A DNA stretch of 64,000 nt from assembly GCA_965202585.1 (NCBI GenBank), contig OZ241826.1, positions 17,918,001 through 17,982,000 on the forward strand, read 5' to 3'. The notes under the pieces are model-generated. The model did no database searches and had not been told where the DNA came from. It was given only the letters and a program-made list of their open reading frames with translations. Made by a program: the position numbers and the translations under genes. The stretch is from Thalia democratica. Its lineage: Eukaryota. Shown one piece after another: positions 28,903 through 55,700 of the stretch (the first letter of the stretch is position 1; the number at the start of each line of letters is the position of its first letter).

Positions 28903-29001
28903 TCTGACGTCATCAAATAGTCTTTCTGACGTCACACGTTATATCTGACGTCATAACACGTTACCTCTGAGTCCTACGTTCACACTTTCCTTCTGACGTC
29001 A
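28903..29001. promoter_or_regulatory. Cluster of four perfect CRE palindromes (TGACGTCA) plus one AP-1-like site
   Basis: TGACGTCA at 28905, 28927, 28946 and 28994, and TGAGTCC at 28968; ends 5 nt before ATG 29007. Confidence 0.6.
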
Positions 29002-29006
29002 CAAAG

Positions 29007-29277
29007 ATGCTTCAGTTGCTAGGCAGCGGCACGGGCATGACCACCCACAACACGATCGAGAGGTCACGGTCGGGAGGGGGGTGGCACCAGAACGAGGGGA
29101 ATTCCCACAACCACAGCCACGAACACCACTGTCACCATGGAAACAACAACAAGAGGAGGAAGATGTCTTCTGGGGGTCAGGGGAGGAGAAACTCTCAGGT
29201 GTCGAGCAGAAGGAATTCTAGGGGAAGTCATTCTAGTAGTAGGAACAGTAGTGGGAAGGAGAAACTGCTGGAGGAGG
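29007..29277 (+). CDS. Candidate alternative first exon B (His/Ser/Arg low-complexity ORF from 29007; second frame from ATG 29137)
   Basis: GC-rich island directly after four TGACGTCA sites, with strong donor GG|gtaaga at 29278. That donor is phase 1 for the 29007 frame and phase 0 for the 29137 frame, so the link to the anoctamin body is unresolved. Confidence 0.55.
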
Positions 29278-29543
29278 GTAAGAGGAGAAGAAGGCGCAGT
29301 AAGAGTAAAAAAGTTTGTTCAAATTGTTAATAAAAGTATGTGTAAATCTGTTTATTGTTTTATAAGTATGTTTGATTTTTTAATGCTTAAAGTTAAAATT
29401 ATTTTGTTTCACGACCGTTTCGGCTTTGATTTTAAAGCTTAGTAGTCAGTTGTACTAATACAATGCAAATAATTATTTTTTTTAGACAGTTTTTATATAA
29501 GACGTAATACTAGTATTCTTAATTGCAAGTAGCTAATATAATG

Positions 29544-38445: not shown

Positions 38446-40430
38446 GTTATTTTTTATTGTTTTTTTAACTTAATTTACTACTTCGTTAACAACTTTTTTT
38501 ATCATTGTTTAAAAACGGTGTAAAAACACTTTTATAAACTATATTTTAGAGTGCTCTATATAACACACAAAATGTGCTACAAAATAGCGATTATTGATAA
38601 GTAGTTAGTTTAGATAAATCCTAACTAAAATAAAAGTGAACTCTAATATAACGTTCATGGAACTTCTAATAAAAAGCCGTGTATTTCAACTTTTTTAAGA
38701 AATTTACTTATCTTAGGTAGGTGTTCTTCTAGTGTATATACAAGACTTACCTAACTTTACAACTAAAGTTGTTATGTTCGTTACTAAATGAATAATTTAG
38801 AACTTTTGCATGTTTGTATCACGTCTAACGTGATTGATTATAAAATTAAAAACTTATGGAACTTCCCAAGACTGTGTTATGTTTATTGAGCCTTATAAGT
38901 GTAATTATATCATTATTAGTTTTGTCTCAGGTACTTTTGTTTTCATGACATGAAAAAAACATATGTTGTATTTGTACTGTGTTCCTTTTATTTTAAAATA
39001 GTAACGCTAAATGTGTAGTAATTGTTTTTTATAGAAAATAATTCTAACAAAACAGAGAACACACTCTTCAAGTTTGTTATTACCTTAATGTTTGTTGCTG
39101 TCAATATAAATTTTAAGTCACATAACTTTGAATATTGTAAAAGTTGATTTGTTGGATTTTTTAATCAATCTGGTTTGAATAAATTCTATCCGAATGTTTA
39201 TTTATATTTATTCAGATTTATTTTATTATTAAACAGATTCGAAAGTAGTCAGCTTTATTGAAGTTATTGAAATTGGTTTTAAAAAATGTGCAAAACTAAT
39301 TAGATCAAACATAGTTTTAAGAACATACGCTTACTCTATAAACTAAGTTAATTGATTATTGTTATATAAGTTTTCAGTTGGCTGTAATTCAAAAATTTGT
39401 GTTTTTTAGGTCATACTTGATTGACTGAAAATTTATACTAGAAAATTATATTACCAAAATTTTTATAAATTAAATTAACCAAGCTAAAAATATTTTAAAC
39501 TAAGTTGTATAAAATATACTTTGAACTATATATTTCTATGTAAATGGTTTTCACAAACCTTGATGTGTTAACATTTATTAAATTCACAATCATATAACAA
39601 TGCAAAGACTGCTAAAAATTTTAATTTCCGGAACTTTTAGAGTGTTGAAACTTTTATATATAAGTGTTGAACTTGTTTGACTATTTATCAAAAAATATAT
39701 AGTTTATCGATTGCAAAATTTTTTTCAACGCTATTTTCTTTCAACAACAATAAAAAAATACCGTTTTGTTTCATGCTTTTTTTTTCTACTTATTGTGTAA
39801 ATAAAAATTCCTCAGTGAACTTTTAGTCTTATAAAGCACTCTGATTTTGCTTTTCAAAATAATAAAAAATAGGTTGTAAAACAGTTTGCAATGACAGATA
39901 AATTTAAGTTGATTTACTTGAAGTTATTTTTATATATTTCCTGCAATATAAACTCCTTAGTGAAATATTTTTTAACCTACTCGACTTTCTTATTTTTCTA
40001 GTAATAAACTTTATTGTCATATAAGTCTAAAACTTTTTATTAGTTCTGCCCGTGAAACTTTAGCAAACGCCAATCAAATCTTATTGCTCTCTTTATATCA
40101 AATCTTTGAAATCTGTTTAAACGAAATCATATTTAGAAGTCTAGTTTTCGGATACTTACTTATTTAAATGGTTATTATTTAAAGTAAAATATAATTAAAG
40201 GTTATTTAAATATGTTAACCAAACTTATAACAAAATCCAAATCAAAGTACACTAAAGCTTTTTTTCACATTTGTAACTATGGAATATAAAATGTGACGTA
40301 ATTTTTTGGTTAAAATTTTTCATCAAAACATTTGAGTCTAAAAAAACTTTATACTGTGAGTTTGCTTTACTGAAATCTCAAGCAAAATTGCTAGTGTAGA
40401 AAAGTAAGATAACAAGCAAAAAATTAAAGT

Positions 40431-41366
40431 ATGTCGACTAACAACTCAAGTACTGATGTAAAAGAAGTAGACGAAAAGGAGTTTGAAAATGTAGTCACAG
40501 AAAACAAAAGCTTGTCAGCGGAAAATGACAATCTTTTACAAAATAATTTGAATTCTAACGGGAGTAATAAAAGTGAAACCAGCGTTTTGAATGAACAAAA
40601 GGACGGAAACAGGCTTTCAATTTTGCAAAACGAAAATTCATTGAAAGTACCAGATTTGAAATCATTCAATAACCAAGACACAGATGTTGAAAGTACTGAA
40701 AGCGGTATAACAGCAGGAAGGAGTAAGCTCTCGAATAGTTTCAATAACAGCCATGAGAGCTACATGTCTACGATTTACAGCAAGAGCAAAAGTTCCATTT
40801 TAAACTCACAAGTAGTAGAAAGTATTAAACGAAATCGACTTAATAAAGAAACTTTTGGTAAAAAATTGGCTTCTATTAAAGAATATGGGAGTAAAATTAA
40901 TCTACCGAAGAATATTTTTACGAGGAAAAATACAGTTTCTCCGTTAGGAAATGACAAACATGAAAACAATACAGATACAAAATTAAGTGTAAATAGTATA
41001 AAAACAGAAAATGTTACAAAAAGTGATTCTAAAAGCAGTCTAGTTAAAAACGATCATTTAAGCAACGAGAGTTTAGCAACCAAAGATAGTTCTATACCCC
41101 CAGAAAGTGACCGTTCAAATAATTTAGTGTCAAGACATTCTCAACACATACTAAACTGGGCTTCAAACTCAAACCACAAACTGAACGTTGCCGAAGTCTT
41201 CTCCTGGCAGAACTTCCATAAAAAACTGGAAGGGTTGAAAAATTTGAGAAAGGGTTCTACTCTTTCGTTGCCTGAGCGAGTTGTCAGGTTTTGCTCGATG
41301 CCTTTCGTTTTAATGCAAAATTCATTTAGGAGGCGTGAAAGCGAAACGTCGTCGCAGAAAGTAGAG
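40431..41366 (+). CDS. ANO: Candidate alternative first exon E, 312 aa Ser/Asn/Lys-rich, predicted disordered
   Basis: The 322-codon ORF is the longest in the window and unlikely by chance at this AT content. GAG|gtaact donor is phase 0. Confidence 0.75.
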
Positions 41367-42145
41367 GTAACTTTTGTGAAGTTATTGATTGAAAGTTGAA
41401 AAATTTTTTAGATGGTTAAAAATTTATAATATAAAAACTAATTGTTCAACTATGAGGTTTGGTTGGTGTTAAACTGCTTAAAACTTTAAATCTTAAAATC
41501 ATAAAAAACACAGGTAGCTTACCTGAAAATATTGATTAAAAGTTGAAAAGTTCAAAAAATGTTTAAAAATTTGATTACATAAAAAATTGTTTCTAAAATA
41601 TACTTCTGGAAGTTTGTGAAAATATTGGTTAAAAGTTGTATTCTCATCTGTTTAAATGTCCTTTTTACAATTTTTGTTGATAATTTTTGAGTTTACTTTT
41701 CTGAAAGTATTGATTCAAGTTGAAAACTCATTTTGTTATCTTGTCACTTAAACGAATTTGAATAACAAATATTCGCATAAAACTTCTGTGATCGCATAGA
41801 AATTATTAAGTATCTAAAAGTAGTGATATAATTTGAAAAGTTCAAAAGTTGTTTTTATATGATAAAGTAGAAAATTGTTATATATTTTAAAGTTGTGAGA
41901 TTTGCTTGTTTTTTTTTTCTTTGTTATTACTTGTATTTGAAACCTGAAAGTTAACAAAACAAAAAACAAAGGAAACTTTTCTAAAATATTGATTATAAGT
42001 TTAAATTTTGATAGGTTGTTGGAAAATTTGTTCGTTTAAAGTTTTATCGGTAAATTGACAACTAAGTTCAGTTTTTGTTCAATTTCTGTACATTGTGGTT
42101 ACGGAGATAACTTTGTTGAAAAAATTGATTAAAGTTGAAATTTAC
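41367..42145 (+). repeat. Degenerate repeats of the intron-start sequence after exon E
   Basis: About six copies of (ac)ttt..gaaa.tattgatt.aaagttgaaaa at ~41370, 41520, 41610, 41698, 41975 and 42110. Confidence 0.55.
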
Positions 42146-44101: not shown

Positions 44102-46713
44102 GTAAGAAATTTAAAATTTGTTAATTTAATAAACAATATATGATTGTTTATATATTTAATTTGTTGTTAACAAAAAAATATTGTCGAAAACTTGCTTTTT
44201 TGATCAAATGAGTTAATTAGCTTGATAAGAATACTATTAAGTAAAAATATTTGGTTTGAAACAGTTTTTTTTTTAATCAAACTTGGTTGTTTAAACTTAG
44301 CTAACTTTTTAATTACTTATTTTAATTTTTTATATTGTTAATTGAACAAAAAATTGCTAGCTTAAAAAAATTTAATAGTTGTCTAAACTTAAAAATCAAT
44401 GTTTGCAATAGTTATTTAACAGTATGTTAAAGCTGATATAAAAAGTTTATTAAAGTTTTTTTACAACAAAATCTTTTTAGCAATATTATTACAGTGAGTA
44501 ATACTTTAAAACATTTAATTTTATGTTTAGATTAAACTTAGAAACTAAAAATATTACCAAAACAGACAAACAAATATAAATAAGAACAAATGTCTCAAAT
44601 GAATTAACTACTTAATTGTTTTTACATAAAAAAGAAGAAAATCTATATTATATCAACAATCAAAATCATTACGTTTTAACTAACAAATTTAAAACTAACT
44701 CAAAACTAGTTTAGTTGTAAAAAACATTTTAAGTTTCGAAACAGAAACAAATTGTTCATTATGTGTTTCATTAAACTTTAAACATTGTACTACAACTTTA
44801 AGGATACTACTTAAAACTGTAACAATTTAATTTTAACACACTAACTAACTTTTGCAAAATGTTTTTCTTAAGTAGCTTTGCGTTCTCTAAGTTTATTTTT
44901 TATGAAAAATTAAACCGGAAATTAGCCTACTTTGATTTTTTCATTGAATTTTTAAAAGTGCTAGTTTATTTTAAAACTCATTAGTTATTAGTGCTATGTA
45001 TAAGTACATTAAACTTTTTACGAGTGATACTAAGGACTACTATAACGATGAAGTTTGTTTGTTTATTATTTAACATTTAGATGTTTAAGTACTGAAAATA
45101 TAATACCATTGTTTTAGATTTTCAGTAATGAAGTTTTATGGCATTTTTCAAATATTTGTTATCTCTTTAATAACAGTTTTTTCTTTTTAATTACTAATAA
45201 GCTGTTTAAACTGATTAAGACTTGTAGAGGTCAGGCTTTTAGATTCTTTCTAAGCAAGAAACATCTACTAAAAGATTAAAAAATGCTTTAAATGCAAAAA
45301 AGCTCGATTGCTTACAACTTTCATTCATATAAAGTTTAACTTCTTTATGCTAATTATTAGCCAAGTTTTCTGGTTTGTTTAACTTTAAACTACTTAATGG
45401 GTGAAATAAACGATTCTCCTTAGAAGCTTATTTTGTAAACTATTATTTATCTTATTGGCTTACAGTGGAATGAAATAGAATGTTTTGCAGTAAGTTGTTA
45501 CCATACAAAGTTATATTAAAAGTTAAAAACATACAAAGAAACTGTTGTAAGAAAAGTTCAATTTACATACAAACTTTGTCATCGTTAAAACACTATTTGG
45601 ACACTGTTGTTAATAATATATTTTACATTACTTGTTGAGTTACTTTAAAATCCTAATGGCTTCTTGCTATTACTATATACATAGCAATGAGTCAAAAATA
45701 TGTCGGTTGTCTAAACCTAATAATGTGCAAGTTTTTCATACTTTGCAGACAGTGAGTATTAAAGTGTGATCACTTTTCAATGAGACTAAAAAGTTTAAGT
45801 TGTATAACATAACAGCTTATTTTAATTAGCTTGGTATTTAACTTTGTTATAAATAAATTGTTTCTTGTATGTTAAGTTGTAATCACATTTTTAGTATTTG
45901 ATATATAGCACGTAGCTCAAAGTAAAATGTTTTGTATAAAACCTAGACTACTTTTAAACTTTATTTTGTTGCTATATACAACTTGTGATTATGTAATATG
46001 TTAAAGTATTTCTAAACGCTAAATTTTAAATACACATTTCCTACTAAATGTTTAATAATATGATAGTTCTTACTTCAAAGACAGAGTGGCAAGATTTTAA
46101 AACTTAGCACTTCAATAGAAAAAATGTTTATTAGTGTTGACTTAAAAACTCATACTCGAGTAATGTTGAGAAACTTGTTTCTTTTTTGAATCTTGATAAC
46201 TAGGTTTATGTTAAAGCTACTTGCTTACCCATAGTAACGCTAAGTTAAACATTACGATGTTTGAATTTTAATTGCTGCAAACTTTATGCTACATTATGTT
46301 GCATTATTACGTCACATCGCGCTGTTTACAAGTTGCAGTGACGTCACAAACAGTGGTGATGATTGCCTGTGTGCGCTTCATTTTTTTTTTGTTTTTATTA
46401 TTTTATTTATAGAAAAATTAGTTATGATCGTAACAATAAGTTAATTTTTTTAAAAAACTTACTTATTTTAACAAAAGTTCATGCGATTAGTTTGATTACG
46501 TTTCTTCAACGTTCTTTGTTTTGTGATTTGAAAATATCCTTCTGACACGCTATATAACATACGCCAAGCCAAATGGTACGCTTCTCAAAAATTTTTTTTT
46601 TAAATTTTATAAGCATACTGAATTTTCCCAAACAGAGACTGAAACCAACTCTCTACATTTTTGAAGCTGCTAGTTTTATAAACTATATGTAACAAACTTA
46701 CACTTCATAACAG

Positions 46714-49700
46714 AGGTTGAAATCAACGTTGCACTTCAACGATGGCCAGCGGAAGATCGATTTCGTCATGGCCTACATAGAAGATGAGGACGAAGAGGAG
46801 GAAGGAGGTTCTGTTAATTACCAGAGGAGGCAGGTTTATCAGGAGGCGTTGAAGAAAAAGGGACTGGAACTGGAGATCGAACCTAAAGAAGTGATTAACT
46901 GTTTTGTAATATATATACAAACCATAGCAGCAAGTTTAATGTTGACTTGAGTTGTTTATTAATTTTATGTGCTTGAAATTGAAGCTTATACTAACAAAAT
47001 TGTAATTGTTACTAACTAACTTACAGTTTCTTACAAACTTTGAGGTAAGGCTGCATTGAAAAAACAAACGTTTTTAATGTTTTGTAGGAGAACAGCAGTG
47101 CTTTTTTTCAGCTCTAAAAGTTATAAACTGTTATAGCTTATGAGTTCAGCAATGTTTTGCTGTCAACATAAATAGACTAGTTCAGCAATGTTTTGCTGTG
47201 AGGTAAGACTGCATTAAAAAAAAAACGTTTTTTAATGCTTTTTTTAGCTGTAAAAGTTATAAACTGTCATAGCTTATGAGTTCAGCAATATTCTGCTGCC
47301 AATATAAATTAAATATACTCTATAAGTTAAACAAATTTAGATGATTTTAACTATTACAGGAATCCCAAGATCAAGTAACGTGTTTTGTGAAGATTCACGT
47401 TCCAAAACCCATCTTGTACGACTATGCTGAGAAAATGAGAATGAAAATGCCTCTGAAAGAACAAAATGTATGTTAAATTTTACATTATAACTCAAAACGC
47501 GTTTATGCTATACGTAATATGTGCTATTACGTACAAATTTGACTTACTTTTAATGAGCACTTCATTACTTTAAACCAATCAAACTGAGTATCTTCTCCGA
47601 TATAATACGTTAGAACACAATAATTTTGCTAAGGATATTACTGATGCTTTTTATAAACACAAACTAGGTACAAGTAAAATCATCTTATCGCTCTTAGTAT
47701 TAAAAGTACAAAAATTATTCAACTAAATACCAAAAAAAACAAATTTATAAAAACAGGTAGACGACCATATGGAAGAAGGAATAGATCAGGAAGAAATTTG
47801 TGATCTTTTGAGTTGTAACACAGAAGTTAAATGCATGAATTGCTTCAAACTCAATAATCATGTACTACAAGAAGCCGTTAGTTAATTTAGTTGCTTTACT
47901 TTTGTATGTACAGAGAACTTTAATTTATGATGATAGTTTTCACAACAACGTAAAATTTAATATGCTTTCAGTTTATAAAATGTAGTTCTGTAATGGCTGT
48001 TTTTAAACTTAGTTTAATGGTTTTGTACTATAAAGTTATAAGGTTAAAATTTTTGAGCTACTTAAAACTAATTAAACATATGTATAGACAACTAGTTTTA
48101 TTAATTTGTATAACCTTTATTTATACCAAAAAAGAATTGTATTAGTACTTAATAAGTATTTTATTAGCCAAATATTCAACGCGAGGTCGTAAGTTTCATA
48201 GCAGTACTAGATAGTAGTTGGTAATATAACTAAACAATAGAAATCTAGGAAACTTGCTTTTAATTGTTATGCTTAGATATAACAACCTAAAACTTGATTA
48301 TCTGTCGTACGGATTATCTGTTTTATGGATACACGTAGAAGAAATAATGTAAAACTATTAATTTATTATATTTAGACTAAAATGTTTATTCAAAATTTTT
48401 GTCTTTTTTACGATTAATATTTCTCTGAGAGTTTTTGGTTTTAAAAAGAGCTCCTTGCTAAAAAGAAATACATATCAAATACTTCTTTGTTTATTAAAAT
48501 TGCTGACGTTTTAATGCTTGCTATGAAGTTTAAACAAAGTATTTAGCTCTATACAACAAAGAAACTTATTTTTTACTAGCAATTAGTTTTTTGTCAAAGT
48601 GACCAGAGTTAATGATAGATATTAGAAAACAGGTAGCTTTAATGTAATGTTTAGTATGTTAGACTTTTTAGACTCGTTTTGAATTTCAAAACAAAATGCA
48701 AAAGCAAAAGTCATGTTTTTTGCATTAGCTTAGTTTATAATATCAGAGTAGTTACCAACTTTAATACGTAATAAACAAACTTTTATTTGTTACGTAGGCA
48801 AGAATCAGAAGAGAAAAGAGAGAAGTTAGTTAGAAACCCGTTTTATTTAAAAACTTGTACTTTTATTTTCATTTGGTATACTTTTTAAAAAACTTGTTAT
48901 TTCAAGAGAGAAGAATACTACACTGCGGAATTTGTGAACGAGAAAAAACACTTCTTCGATATCAATGATAATGAAGACTTCTTTAGCGATGCACAAAGAT
49001 CTAGAATCGTAAATAAATATATATATATTTAATTTTTATAAGGATTTTCATCGATTAAGTTAAAGATTTAAAATTTACCATAAAACTATTTTTCTATCTT
49101 TAAAAAAAAATTTACAACATACAATAACAGCTTTTAGAAATTTTCAATGATTTTTTTTAACCTAATCAGCATTTTTTAAACATGTATTTAGTTTTTTGTA
49201 AGAACTTAAAAACAGACTTTTTAGTTTTAAAAATGTATTTTTTTATGTGTTGGACTCTTAATAAACAAAAATAGTTATACTTAATTTTGTTTCTACTTTA
49301 TATCAGTAGCAACATTAGTTTTGAATAGTAAAAACAATTTAGGCATACAGAGTACTGAATGAGACGAGATTCGGTCAGGAAAAGACAGCAGTTGGAATTA
49401 CAAAACTCATAAACGATGGAACATATGAAAGTGTATTTCCATTACATGATGTTAGTTTGTATTAATGCAGTAATATATATATTTATTTGTTTAAAAAACT
49501 TATAAACGATGGAACATACGAAAGTGTATTTCCGCTTCACGATGTTAGTTTTTATTTGCATTACATTAAATATTTGTTTCTAAATAGTTGCACAAAACTC
49601 GTAAATTATGGAACTTGTATATTGTATTTCCATTACATGATGTAAATTTGCATTATTATACTTAAAATCGAATGTAAAACTTATTACCCTGTCTTTAGTA

Positions 49701-52700
49701 GAAATAAAGGTTTTTTTATATGTATTTTGTCCATTTATAAACACAACCATACTATTTAACCTTTTTTCTTCTAGTGAAAAGTTTTATTTGTAAAGTAAAA
49801 CTGTTTTAGATTAGTACTAAGGAATAAAAGTGTACTACTAAAAACCTGTTTTTCAAAGCATTTTAGTTTAAAAATGTTTTATTAATTAAATTAGATTCAA
49901 AAACTATTTATTTGCTTTTATGAAAACAAGCTAATCTTTAAAGTCTTAACTTTTTTTTAAGTTTTAACCATTAGAATTAACGTACCCGATTTGAAATAGA
50001 TCAAAATAAACAAGTTTATTCGGTTCAAATCAGTTGTTACTTAAAGTAAACTTTATTGATAATGTTTTTTAACTTTACTTATTTTTCAATCATTTGCAAC
50101 TGTTTGATTTTTTAAAGCTAAAAAAATCTTAAATTCTTTTAACCTTAAAACTATTTTATTCAAACAAATAAAAATTTGAAATTGTGTACAAAACTTCAGT
50201 TAAACTTTGTAAAAGTAAAGAATTTCACATATTGATTTTAGCCACATGTAACTTGATACAACGGCACGGCTTAATTTCCTTGGGGAGATGTTATAAATAA
50301 AACCTCGCACTAACTTATACTACGGACAGTAATTAATTAATGCACTTTTGTGCGTTCTGTTTTACTAGCTTTACCTTAATTTATAAAATGCAAGATATTT
50401 TTGGTTTAACTTTTTAACTAAATACTATTTTAAACATACTGTTCTTTTAATAAACATACTTTGTTTTAGTTTTTTTTATATCATTTAAACAACTAATTTT
50501 TACGTTGGTTCTTTATGTTCAACGTGCTTAACTTTTATAAAGTTTTTTTTTTAGAAATTATTAAAAACATTGGGCTAGGAGCGATTTTAGAAAAACTGTT
50601 GTTTTGTTGTTTTACTTTTTCTTTTATTTTAAAGTTAAATAGTATTATCTCGGATGAACTCAAAACTATATTTTATATCTTATTTAGTAAGTATTAGTAA
50701 AGAAAGAAGATGTTTTGTGTGTACTTTTGTGTTTTTTAGTGCTTCTATGTTCATTAAAGTATTTTTACTGTTTCTAAAATTTTTAATGCTTATTTAAAAT
50801 GCTTTAAAACAAAATCAACTTCAAGACTTCATTAAATTCAGATACACTAGTTTAACATTTGTAAAGCTTTATTTGAAGTCTTAATGCTAGTACACAAAAG
50901 ACTTAAGATTGTTAATAATCATGAGTAGTTTGCGTTATTTAAAGTAATTAAAGTTCGCTTGTTTTGAAGTATGTTGTTATTTATTTTTGTAAACTTTGTC
51001 GTTAACACCAATGCGAAATTTACAGATATATGTTTATGTATAAGCTTAATTTACTCTTTAAAAAGTTAAAGTAAGTTTAGCCTTAGTTTTAAATTCTTTT
51101 AAGTTGAGTTTTTATTTTTATATGAGTAATTTTTTCAATGACAGCAGCTTCAGTTAAAGTAGTGGTAATGCTTAGTTTTTAATCACTAACTTACAGTAAA
51201 GTTTACCGCTGGCTATCGTTTTTACTCTTTATCAAAACAAAAAATACTGCAGTGTCTTATTCTAGGTCTTTATTCGCTAATAGCAATTATAAAAAAATCA
51301 TTTTGTTTTCTACTTATGCATTTTTATGTTAGTAGTTAGTGAGCAGTTAACGTTTTGTTTTGTTAATTAATCAAACTATTATTAGTCAAGTATTCTGTTG
51401 GGCACTCTGCCTTGGATGAGAAAAATGTCGGATGAGTGGGAACTGAGCAGATATTCGAATAAAAAGGAAGGAACCAGAGACAGCAAAAATAAAGTGGAGA
51501 CACCGGGAACAACTAGAAGTAGTGCAGAAAAAGTTAGAAAAATTAGTAATCAGTTAATAGTTTAGAAAAGAATATAAAGTTGTAAATTTTTGTTTAGTTA
51601 GAACAGTATTTAGTTAATAATTTATTCTTAATTTTTATGTTTAGTTGGTATGCAGTACTTTTTTCAAATGCAAGTTTATTTAGATGAAAGCACTTGTAAG
51701 AACCTTCACTAGTTATGAAAAAGCTAGATTGAGTAAACAGTTAGACAACAAAATGTAAAAAATATCAAAATTCAGAATGTTTTTCTAAACTGTTTGTGTT
51801 CAGTAAATTACTTTTGGCTTATTGTAAATATAATTCCGATTAAAATTAGTTGCTTTTAGACTCCTTTAATGGATGAGCACTTATAGTTACGGTTTTTAGT
51901 ATTTGTTTCAAAAGTAATTTAAAGGCATTTTTTTGAAGAAAAACAATTGTTATTATCATTCATACTGATTGAACAATAATATGATGATGTATATGTTTAT
52001 AAAATAAACTGTTTTTATTTGAATTATGAAGTAAAAGGGAACGTATAACACAATATTATATATCATAATTCTGATGTCACAGAGAAACGATGCTAAAAAC
52101 CAATCAAAATACCTAAAAACAAATTATATAGCCAGAAACTTATAACAGTATATTTTAATTTTTCATATTATGACGTCACAGGGAACGTACGAGGAAGACG
52201 GTGACGTCATGGACGAAGAAACAACTCCGGTGAGGAGGTTACTGTATAAATACTGGGCAAGATGGGGCAGATGGTACAAACAACAACCATTAGATGCTAT
52301 AAGGTGATTTTTGTGTACTAATTATTATTAACTATTGTTTATAACTATATGAGTTTTTGTCAGATGGTATAAACAACAACCACTAGATGCTATAAGGTGA
52401 TTTATGTGTACTTGTTATCATTAATATTGTTAACAACTATTTAAATTTTGGGGCAGATGGTATAAACAACAAACATTAGATGCTATAAGGTGATTTTTGT
52501 GTACTTATTATAGTTAATACTAGTTATAGACAACATGGGGTAGATGGTATAACCAGGTATTTTATAAATATGTTTCTATTTATAAGTTTAAGTATACATA
52601 TGTAAAATTTTAACCAAAATAAATACTGAAACTTATTTTTTTGAATTTTCATTATATTATACAATCAATAACATAAATCTTTCGCGAACCATACAAACCA

Positions 52701-55700
52701 AACCTGACCAATAAAAAGCAACACTATAACAGCAATATTTACAATTAACAAAAATAATTTTGAAAAATATACTTTGACATCATAGGAAGTATATGGGGGT
52801 AAAATACGCCCTCTACTTCGCCTTTCTCGAGCATTACGTCACAATGCTTTCGATTGCTGCAGTTGTTGGGATAGTGGTGATGTTGTACGGAATAGTTACA
52901 CTGTACAGCTCTGACAATATCAGGTTTTGATTGAATGACGTAATATTAAGCTCTATTCCATTAAATGTTGAGCATACTTTGCTCTAATTGGTGGATGCGA
53001 TAGTCACGTGATGCAATATGAAGCCTTGATCGTTGTCGTTGTCCTTGAGTAGAGCATATTTTAGCATGAAACGTTTTACTAAACTCCTTAGAAAACTATA
53101 AGAGTTTTAGTAACAAACATTTACCAGTAGTTTTAAAACAAATTATAACTTTGTTAATAATAAATATAATCTTTAAATACTTTGTTAAACAAAAACTAAA
53201 CAGCTAAATACGTTTAACAAACTTTTGCATGTAGTAAACGAAATTGCATGTGATTGCAGGAAGTACTTTGGGGACAAGATAGCCCTGTACTTCGCATGGT
53301 TGGGCTTCTACACGGAAATGCTGATTTGGCCCACGATAGTCGGACTCGCATGCATGACGTATTCGTTGTGCACCATGAACTCGTATGCCCCTGTGTTAGT
53401 TTTGTTTTAACTATGTATTTAAGTATTAAAACAGTTGATAAACAAAGAAACTACGAATCGGTAGTATTAGCGACCAATTTACACGACTTGAATAAGTTTA
53501 AATTTTAATATTACAATAAACTAAAAGAAAAATACTTTTTATATAACTTCAAAATTTATATCACTTATATGAGTAAGATAGCTCGTATATCACTGTATAA
53601 CTTTTTTTTTTAATTTTTATTAAAAATCTATATTTTTATATTTACTGTACGTAACATCCTACACTTACTCATGTAAAAATTTATTTGAGTCTAAGAATTC
53701 GCAAAAAATTAACCATACGTATTTAGTAACACACTTTAGTCTACAAAAGTAAATCTTAATAAGTTGCACATATCATAAAAAAACTAATCATTGCTAGTCA
53801 TTAAAATAGCAAGTTTTTACAAGCATATTTTTAAACTTGATTGCTTTTTATTTATTTCGTAATTATAGTTGAAGTCAATTTATTTTTTTACAATGATTTA
53901 TAAAACAGTTTGTCAAAAAAGTTTGCTTACAAATATTTTTTTGCAATTGAATAACAAAGTATAGTTATTCATATCCAACTACAGTTCAACAAGGTAAATA
54001 ATCTTTTTTTAGTTTAGTATATGTTGTCTGTGCAACTTCTAAAAGTCAAGTAAGAATTTTTGTTTTATTATTTAGTACAAAAATCTTTAAAAAGCAAAAA
54101 AAATATTATTTTTCTTCGAATTAAAATGTAGAAATAAGACAAAATAATTAATAAAGTATAAAACTATATTTAATTATCAAGACAAATAAAATATTCAACA
54201 GAAATTCCTCATTGTTTACTTTTATCATTAAAGTACAGCTTATTTGAATACAAAGCGCGCGAAACTAAAAATTGTTTTTTTACCGCTAAGCTGTGCTAGT
54301 TTATTACAAAACTTTTGAACATAATTAAGTTTCAAACTATTACAAACTTCTATTTTGTTAAGATTCTTTAAAACTTTACAAATAGTAGTTTATATTGTAA
54401 ATGTTTAAGATTTTTCTAGCTTGTAAATGATGTTTTGTCCTCAGTCTTTACGAGCACCTGAATGCGAATGCCATAAATATCTTATATGACAGTATTTGTA
54501 CTTATAGACAGTATTTGTACTCGTGTATGTTATATTTAAACTAAGTTTTAAAAAAAATTTCAATTCTAATGTTTTATTCTAATTTGATATTTTAATATGG
54601 AATTTTTTTGACCTCAAGACAAAATAAACAAATTGTAAAAGTTTTTGTTAACTAAAATTAAAATTAAAAACTGTTAATTAGCTGATATGAATACCTTTTT
54701 TTATTTTTAAACTTTTTTATCTGAAGGTAAATTAAACTTTTCTATTTAGTCGCGAAGTATGTGATGATACTTATCCTTCTTATGCCGGTGACCTCATCAT
54801 GTGTCCTCAGTGCGATAAGAGATGCGATTTCTGGAACCTAACTTCGTCTTGTCTCGCCACAAGGGTTGGTTGTGACGTCATTAACATCTTATTTATTGTC
54901 ATTAGGCAAAAAATGTTTTTCATAACAAGTTTGCATAGGAGTTATAGGTATCTTACCAACTTACGCTTATTTAAAATGTTATGTTTTACTTAGCTACTTT
55001 ATCTATTTAACTACTTAAAGTGTTAGTTTACTAACATCTTTAAGCTTTTTAATTTGTTTTATTGTAATATCAAAATGTTCTTTTTAAACCAGATAACGTA
55101 CGTGTTTGACAACAACTCAACAATTTTCTTTGCAATATTCATGTCCTTATGGGGTAAGTAAAGTTGCATGTTTTATTCTATTAATATAAAAACGCGTTAT
55201 GAACAAAATAGTTGATAAAAAAACTACTTTAATTTATAAACAACTTTTATAATAACTTTAAATTTCAATTACTAACACTAAATAATCAGGTAAATTTAAA
55301 TTTGATTACAATTTAATGTTAAAATTAACTTTTAAAGCAATTTTTATACCTACTGGAGTTAGACTAATTTAACAAACTTAAGGTTTAATTGCTTCAATAA
55401 AAATTCAAGTTATACTATCACCGGCACTCTCTAGCACAGCGTAGTGGATAGCAACTTTAAAAATACAGACTAAAGCATTTGCTTTTTTCTCACTAGTTCT
55501 TAATGGTTTTGGAAAAAAAAATAACAAAAAAAATAATCAGACTGCATTAGTACCCATTATCTGAGGTTTTATTCCACTATTTTTTTATTTTCTTATTTAT
55601 TTTATTTATTTAAACTATCAGCAACTTCATTCCTTGAGTCGTGGAAGAGAAAGCAGTTCAAGCTCAATTACGAGTGGGATCTTGTTGACTACGACGAAGA

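Follow-up and report, generated by a model that had tools for sequence, protein, structure and literature searches.

The window analysed here, a 64,000-nucleotide (nt) stretch of the Thalia democratica genome (contig OZ241826.1, positions 17,918,001 to 17,982,000 of the forward strand), is very AT-rich, with a GC content of about 25%, and carries on its plus strand, from approximately 46.7 kb to 60.7 kb, a gene with long introns for an anoctamin (TMEM16), a calcium-activated channel/scramblase. Its exon-like open frames match first the Pfam family Anoct_dimer (PF16178) and further on Anoctamin (PF04547), following the order of the profiles; this domain order was read from the individual exon-like open reading frames (ORFs). 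Between the exon at the end of the Anoct_dimer match and the exon that begins the Cys-rich outer loop between the first two transmembrane helices (TM1 and TM2) lie two adjacent exons, referred to as a and b, which both encode TM1. We present here the evidence that exon b is the form used by default, that exon a has been maintained by selection as a coding exon, and that the two are probably alternatives to one another.

The coordinates, splice sites and shared phase 2-2 given for the two exons in a preliminary description of this DNA proved exact when re-read in the sequence. Exon a is bordered by ..catag/GAAGTA..TATCAG/gttttg and exon b by ..ttgcag/GAAGTA..CCCTGT/gttagt, where the slash marks an exon border (and, below, an RNA joint). 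The frame of both is set by the upstream ..QPLDAI (AG/) and by the downstream T/CGC GAA, read as REVCDD, with phase 2 on both sides. Their GC content, 44% for exon a and 51% for exon b, contrasts with the 22-29% of the three introns, of which the one separating a from b measures 336 nt.

Exons a and b are tandem duplicates encoding the same helix, TM1. Their products are identical at 19 of 41 residues (46%, BLASTP E 2e-11), and a tblastn search of the whole window with each exon finds its partner (E 1e-6 to 7e-8); a third copy of the TM1 exon was not found with either query in these 64 kb. The nonsynonymous divergence (dN) between them is approximately 0.65 and synonymous sites are saturated; the duplication is thus old. 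Both exons align to residues 322-360 of mouse ANO1 and 290-326 of mouse ANO6, which correspond to TM1, with a stronger match to mouse TM1 for exon b (43 bits, E 2e-10, ANO6 290-326) than for exon a (27 bits, E 4e-5). Both also exceed the curated cut-off of PF04547 (28 bits), exon a with 45.5 bits at profile positions 2-40 and exon b with 56.6 bits at positions 2-50. BLASTP, the mouse proteins and Pfam therefore agree with the initial claim that two homologous adjacent exons encode the TM1 of this anoctamin.

It had also been claimed that exon b follows the family consensus and that exon a departs from it. The Glu-His pair of exon a at normally Gly-aromatic positions and its lack of two Cys were borne out, but the departure is limited to the cytosolic half of the helix (YFAF-LEHY-V versus YFAW-LGFY-T), in which exon a replaces the near-invariant W by F, Gly-aromatic by Glu-His and T by V. 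In the outer half it is exon b which is odd and derived, since the usual VVG..MLYG..TLY is retained in exon a. Exon a is devoid of both Pro and Cys, whereas the helix of exon b has two Cys and a W-P, and the best 19-residue Kyte-Doolittle mean reaches 2.52 for exon a, the more hydrophobic of the two, versus 1.48 for exon b. Proteins made with one or the other exon would differ only in TM1 and in the residue, Ser or Val, with which the outer loop opens. Not every peculiarity of exon a is exclusive to it: 'GVK' instead of 'G[DE]K' is common across the family, and an acidic residue at the TM1 Gly position is also found in the unrelated fragments P0008 (WLDFYT) and P0021 (WLEFYT). These two fragments were considered as hints of the same exon pair and rejected, as the contigs concerned, L002 (641 nt) and L003 (8.8 kb), hold one TM1 exon each. 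Another protein with three TM1 matches (P0002) was rejected as an exon cluster, being a fusion of tandem whole genes.

The use of the exons was read from an RNA run of the same organism (X3, 47 million letters), in the form of assembled contigs, which drop rare forms. These contigs cover exons and not introns, and the GT..AG joints listed for them are 52303/53260 (depth 52, three contigs), 53394/54750, 54864/55093 and 55842/56353; a loose end at 52182 is identical to window positions 49421-49450 and so gives a further joint, 49450/52182. Exon b is covered at a depth of 27-52. Since the joint 52303/53260 skips exon a, exon a is alternative and exon b is the form in use. Thus, in bulk RNA exon b is the main, default form and exon a is skipped. 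A joint between the two exons (52923/53260) was not seen among the joints listed, where exon a never appears spliced.

The conservation of exon a was addressed by an exhaustive HMMER search against 1.84 billion representative proteins. This search returned a single a-type sequence (P0001, 91% identity), all other matches being ordinary TM1 fragments of 40-56% identity; a word-indexed protein search found P0001 only. P0001 is encoded by a 749-nt marine metagenome contig of ENA (L001) which originates from a relative and has both exons in tandem, a at 41-178 and b at 514-648, with the AG and GT of both kept. Exon a and its counterpart in L001 share 91% amino-acid and 89% nucleotide identity, without any indel or stop; of the 15 changes, 11 are synonymous, and the remaining four exchange V, I and A for one another. 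Estimates of dN and of synonymous divergence (dS) were made against L001 for both exons (Nei-Gojobori), as had been suggested with the first description of the pair: dS is 0.50, dN 0.039 and their ratio omega 0.078 for exon a (binomial P 3.8e-5 against neutrality), and the corresponding values for exon b, which also has no indels or stops, are 0.56, 0.010 and 0.017. Outside a conserved intronic element considered below, intron identity to L001 is 57-72% versus 89% for exon a (Fisher P 1e-9). The low omega of exon a at a dS of about 0.5, while the surrounding intron is mostly 57-72% identical, indicates that exon a has been kept as protein-coding; judged from these sequence comparisons, it is under selection as a coding exon rather than a mere relic. 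Disabling changes in orthologous copies, which the preliminary description had named as evidence against its own proposal, are contradicted by the exon a of L001, which is intact and, like the exon b of this contig, displays strong purifying selection. Exon a is also covered at 92-94% identity by contigs from a second relative (X6) and from two marine metagenomes (X4 and X5). Two scans of JGI metagenome contigs, for peptide patterns of exon a and for a 37-nt invariant block, respectively, revealed no further a-type relatives, and on sequence grounds the a-type exon seems confined to this lineage.

Since exon a is a selected coding exon, is skipped in bulk RNA and duplicates the helix of its neighbor with the same phase and length, we consider mutually exclusive use of a and b as the best reading and a probable one, from which we infer both the inclusion of exon a and strict exclusivity. 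One exon, a or b, would be joined between the exon ending at 52303 and the exon starting at 54750. The pair would stem from an old tandem duplication of the TM1 exon in an anoctamin of the ANO1-7 type (Anoct_dimer then Anoctamin domain), and exon a would replace exon b only in certain cells, at a certain stage of life or under certain conditions. The features by which clusters of mutually exclusive exons have been recognised (PMC5740500) include adjacency, similar length, same phase and homology, and all of these are found here (138 and 135 nt, phase 2/2, 46% identity, E 2e-11); the RNA joints, another such feature, are found for exon b and, in the small X3 set, not for exon a. Mutual exclusivity as initially proposed is consequently supported in part, by the homology, the selection on both exons and the skipping of exon a; the X3 joints listed include neither a co-inclusion joint nor one that splices exon a in.

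Several observations weigh against this interpretation. Exon a is not found spliced in in any X3 contig, among the joints listed for this small assembled set, and the same joints do not include 52303/52786 and 52923/54750. The junctions initially suggested as a check are therefore present on both sides of exon b, and the joint from a to b is not seen, but those that would connect exon a to its constitutive neighbors are not seen either. A single unspliced contig of depth 2 (52721-52870) accounts in full for the X3 depth of 1.59 over 52683-52869; with respect to reads into exon a, the absence of which had been held to speak against the pair, this one small RNA set thus shows no junction into exon a among the joints listed and only this unspliced contig. 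The non-detection of exon a is a test of low power, based on a single small RNA set, on assembled contigs and on part of the joints, namely those listed. In addition, exclusivity is not imposed by the frame, both exon lengths being multiples of three; steric exclusion would require a shorter intron than the 336 nt found; and competing RNA pairing was not found around the two exons. Lastly, the selection test is one pairwise comparison, and the regulatory reading of the UGCAUG motifs described below is post hoc.

Three other explanations were considered for exon a. It may no longer be spliced, its conservation being due to a regulatory role of the DNA or RNA or the loss of its use being very recent. 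The lack of spliced RNA support, an acceptor with a poor pyrimidine tract, the donor gttttg and the conservation of a neighboring non-coding element would all be in line with an unused duplicate. However, this non-coding element shows indels and exon a none, the AG and GT of exon a are kept in L001, and the changes of exon a (11 of 15 synonymous, V/I/A swaps, no indels or stops; omega 0.078, P 3.8e-5) follow a coding-type pattern. If exon a were never spliced, such strong coding-type selection would need explaining, and we regard this possibility as improbable. Alternatively, exon a may be a cassette co-included with b, resulting in two copies of TM1, for instance as an extra helix or a re-entrant hairpin. 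Inclusion of both exons, or of neither, stays in frame, both lengths being multiples of three, and the sequence contains nothing to enforce exclusivity, with no RNA pairing found and an intron of 336 nt. Yet the joint 52923/53260 is not seen in the X3 RNA, and equal length and the same ends are kept in both exons, as would be the case for substitutes. It has been argued that exon pairs encoding a helix are unlikely cassettes, since the topology beyond the pair would be inverted if both were used or none (PMC5740500). By the same argument, cassette use of a and b is unlikely because one pass added or removed would flip everything downstream; co-inclusion would invert the nine following helices and the Cys-rich outer loop, and we consider it highly unlikely. 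The least probable explanation assigns exon a to another type of transcript, for instance one that has an alternative upstream exon or ends early, and makes it no simple substitute of b in the full-length mRNA: X3 contigs that start at 52924 and 51745 do carry foreign stretches absent from the window, but these contigs do not contain exon a, and exon a has the same phase as b on both sides and fits its constitutive neighbors exactly. Mutually exclusive use of the two exons thus remains our favored interpretation. The features of the locus are listed in Table 1.

Table 1. Features of the anoctamin gene around the two TM1 exons (positions in the window unless a contig is named)
Feature	Position	Strand	Details
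Anoct_dimer (PF16178) matches	ORFs at 46711, 49343, 52146	+	profile positions 2-60, 152-189, 189-221
Upstream exon, constitutive	52182..52303	+	end of Anoct_dimer; PF16178 189-221; phase 2 donor AAG/gtgatt; RNA joints
Exon a, alternative TM1 exon	52786..52923	+	138 nt; 46 codons counting split ones; open frame, AG/GT
Conserved intronic element	52985..53105	+	between exons a and b; 86% identity to L001
UGCAUG motif, first	53226..53231	+	34 nt before exon b acceptor; in L001 at 483-488
UGCAUG motif, second (UGCAUGUG)	53245..53250	+	15 nt before exon b acceptor; in L001 at 499-504
Exon b, default TM1 exon	53260..53394	+	135 nt; canonical start; RNA joints both sides
Downstream exon, constitutive	54750..54864	+	start of Cys-rich TM1-TM2 outer loop; RNA joints 53394/54750, 54864/55093
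Anoctamin (PF04547) matches	ORFs at 55537, 56326, 56931, 58739	+	profile positions 49-134, 125-180, 188-244, 333-373

Two long open frames are present on the plus strand upstream of the recognisable anoctamin exons. The first (28971-29327; 119 residues, 52% GC) is rich in His, Ser and Arg, and the second (40428-41396; 323 residues) is rich in Ser and Asn; they may be exons of an N-terminal extension of the anoctamin gene or parts of another gene. Closer to the TM1 exons, a 93-nt tandem repeat (52263-52519, 2.8 copies, 85% matches) carries the last 40 nt or so of the upstream exon and the donor that follows over into the intron. The same GATGCTATAAG/GTGATTT site occurs at 52303, 52396 and 52489, and the RNA uses the first; the second and third copies are preceded by CAG and would form in-frame pseudo-exons of 33 nt. 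In L001, a second copy of the last 13 codons of exon b and of its donor (705-743) follows exon b at a distance of about 57 nt, where the window has none; exon edges have thus been copied in a similar way in a second species. A 14-nt string with TGACGTCA is common to the acceptor of the upstream exon (52168-52181, ttatgacgtcacag/G) and to the exon a acceptor of L001 (27-40, ttatgacgtcatag/G), and the acceptor region of exon a in the window has tttgacatcatag. This shared string may be a branch-point-like motif near the AG or another copied exon edge. Finally, a low-depth X3 contig matches 51745-51934, in AT-rich intron without an open frame, after 225 foreign letters; it may correspond to a repeat or to an unannotated transcript.

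The intron between a and b contains an element that stands out by its identity to L001 (86% versus 57-72% in the flanking intron) and includes a block of 37/37 identical positions with a GCAUG. A coding function of this element was ruled out by one-base indels relative to L001. It has no Rfam match at the gathering score or at E values up to 1, no significant fold (z-scores -1.4 and +0.8) and no compensatory pairs, and on these null results for Rfam, fold and covariation it was also rejected as a structured RNA or known RNA gene. The element, which is in single copy within the window, is proposed from its sequence as a candidate splicing regulatory site. In the X4 and X5 metagenomes, 52939-53089 is matched by 3-5 distinct contigs at 3-5 times the neighboring depth, which may reflect either further genomic copies of the element or the presence of several related species. 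One X3 RNA contig (52924-53110) begins its match precisely where the intron after exon a begins and has at least 255 foreign letters before this point. The foreign letters of this contig and of the contig at 51745 were not found in the window, which suggests that unannotated transcripts or repeats touch the region.

The plus strand of the 64 kb contains only 17 TGCATG sites, and two of them lie just upstream of exon b. Both are kept in L001, the first within a poorly conserved stretch, and the second overlies the likely branch-point and acceptor region of exon b. With factors of the Fox-1/Rbfox type, an exon is repressed by (U)GCAUG located upstream of it and enhanced by (U)GCAUG located downstream. 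A conserved (U)GCAUG in the flanking intron near the exon, as expected of such regulation, is found at 53226 and 53245. A Fox-1/Rbfox-type factor would then bind the two UGCAUG motifs before exon b and block its acceptor, and the conserved element 3' of exon a, also with a GCAUG, would aid the recognition of exon a. By analogy, it is possible, though we advance it only tentatively, that a Fox-1-type factor represses b and favors a in the cells that express it. RNA pairing, on the other hand, was rejected as the mechanism of exclusivity: duplexes between 100-nt flanks are no better than those of shuffled sequences (for a and b in the window and for b in L001). The longest inverted repeat brackets exon b (53167-53199 and 53396-53428; 33 nt, 82% complementary) and is not conserved in L001; it was dismissed as a chance occurrence since the DNA is AT-rich and the pairing no better than in shuffles.

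With regard to function, TM1 and TM6 of TMEM16F form a groove occupied by a lipid trail or by the inhibitors niclosamide and 1PBC. When F321 in TM1 is mutated (F321A), Ca2+ influx and lipid exposure both show an altered onset (PMC10423226). In the alignment with ANO6, both exons have Met at the position of F321 and differ in the neighboring residues (VVMLYGIV in a, ACMTYSLC in b). A swap of TM1 with an acidic/His pair at the cytosolic start of the helix would leave the fold unchanged and would adjust the gating, the handling of lipids or the lipid surroundings of the protein; by comparison with TMEM16F, an effect of the swap on gating, scrambling or lipid preference is plausible. The complete scenario, a cell-type-specific TM1 switch in an anoctamin of the thaliacean lineage, driven by a Fox-1-type factor at conserved UGCAUG sites and giving two proteins with different Ca2+ gating or scrambling, is speculative and, taken as a whole, rather unlikely. 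If it were true, the two forms of TM1 would differ in the TM1-TM6 groove for lipids and inhibitors and in the Glu-His pair at the inner border, and the locus would constitute a helix swap made by nature, informative on what TM1 does in TMEM16 proteins, with the first such exon pair in the family. TM1 has been linked to function only recently, through the TM1-TM6 groove of TMEM16F (PMC10423226), and a pair of selected TM1 variants in one gene offers a minimal comparison for electrophysiology and scrambling assays.

The arrangement described here is reminiscent of several known systems. In egl-15 of Caenorhabditis elegans, an upstream (U)GCAUG represses exon 5B of the mutually exclusive pair 5A/5B, under the control of Fox-1/ASD-1 with SUP-12 (PMC2777236), and as in the anoctamin gene UGCAUG is located upstream of one member of the pair, near the acceptor and branch region. 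The exon order differs, however, the motif-bearing exon being here the distal one, and the likeness is in our case one of sequence motifs. The substitution of homologous exons is common, and enriched, in ion channels and transmembrane proteins (PMC9741552). Exons 8/8a of CaV1.2 and the events in voltage-gated Na+ and Ca2+ channels and in Slo (PMC9741552) likewise involve adjacent homologous exons of equal length and same phase for one membrane element. They concern other gene families, and in the present case splicing is seen for exon b only. The supplementary lists (in text form) of two human surveys of such exons contain no ANO gene, and full-text literature searches did not find a helix-swapping exon pair in an anoctamin, in agreement with the initial impression that none was known. 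Tuning by the swapping of tandem homologous exons is well established for ion channels. The alternative segments a-d of vertebrate TMEM16A/ANO1 are cassette or alternative-start pieces located in cytosolic regions of the protein. As with the exons a and b described here, splicing diversifies a single anoctamin gene, but in Thalia democratica it is a whole transmembrane helix that would be exchanged for a homologous one.

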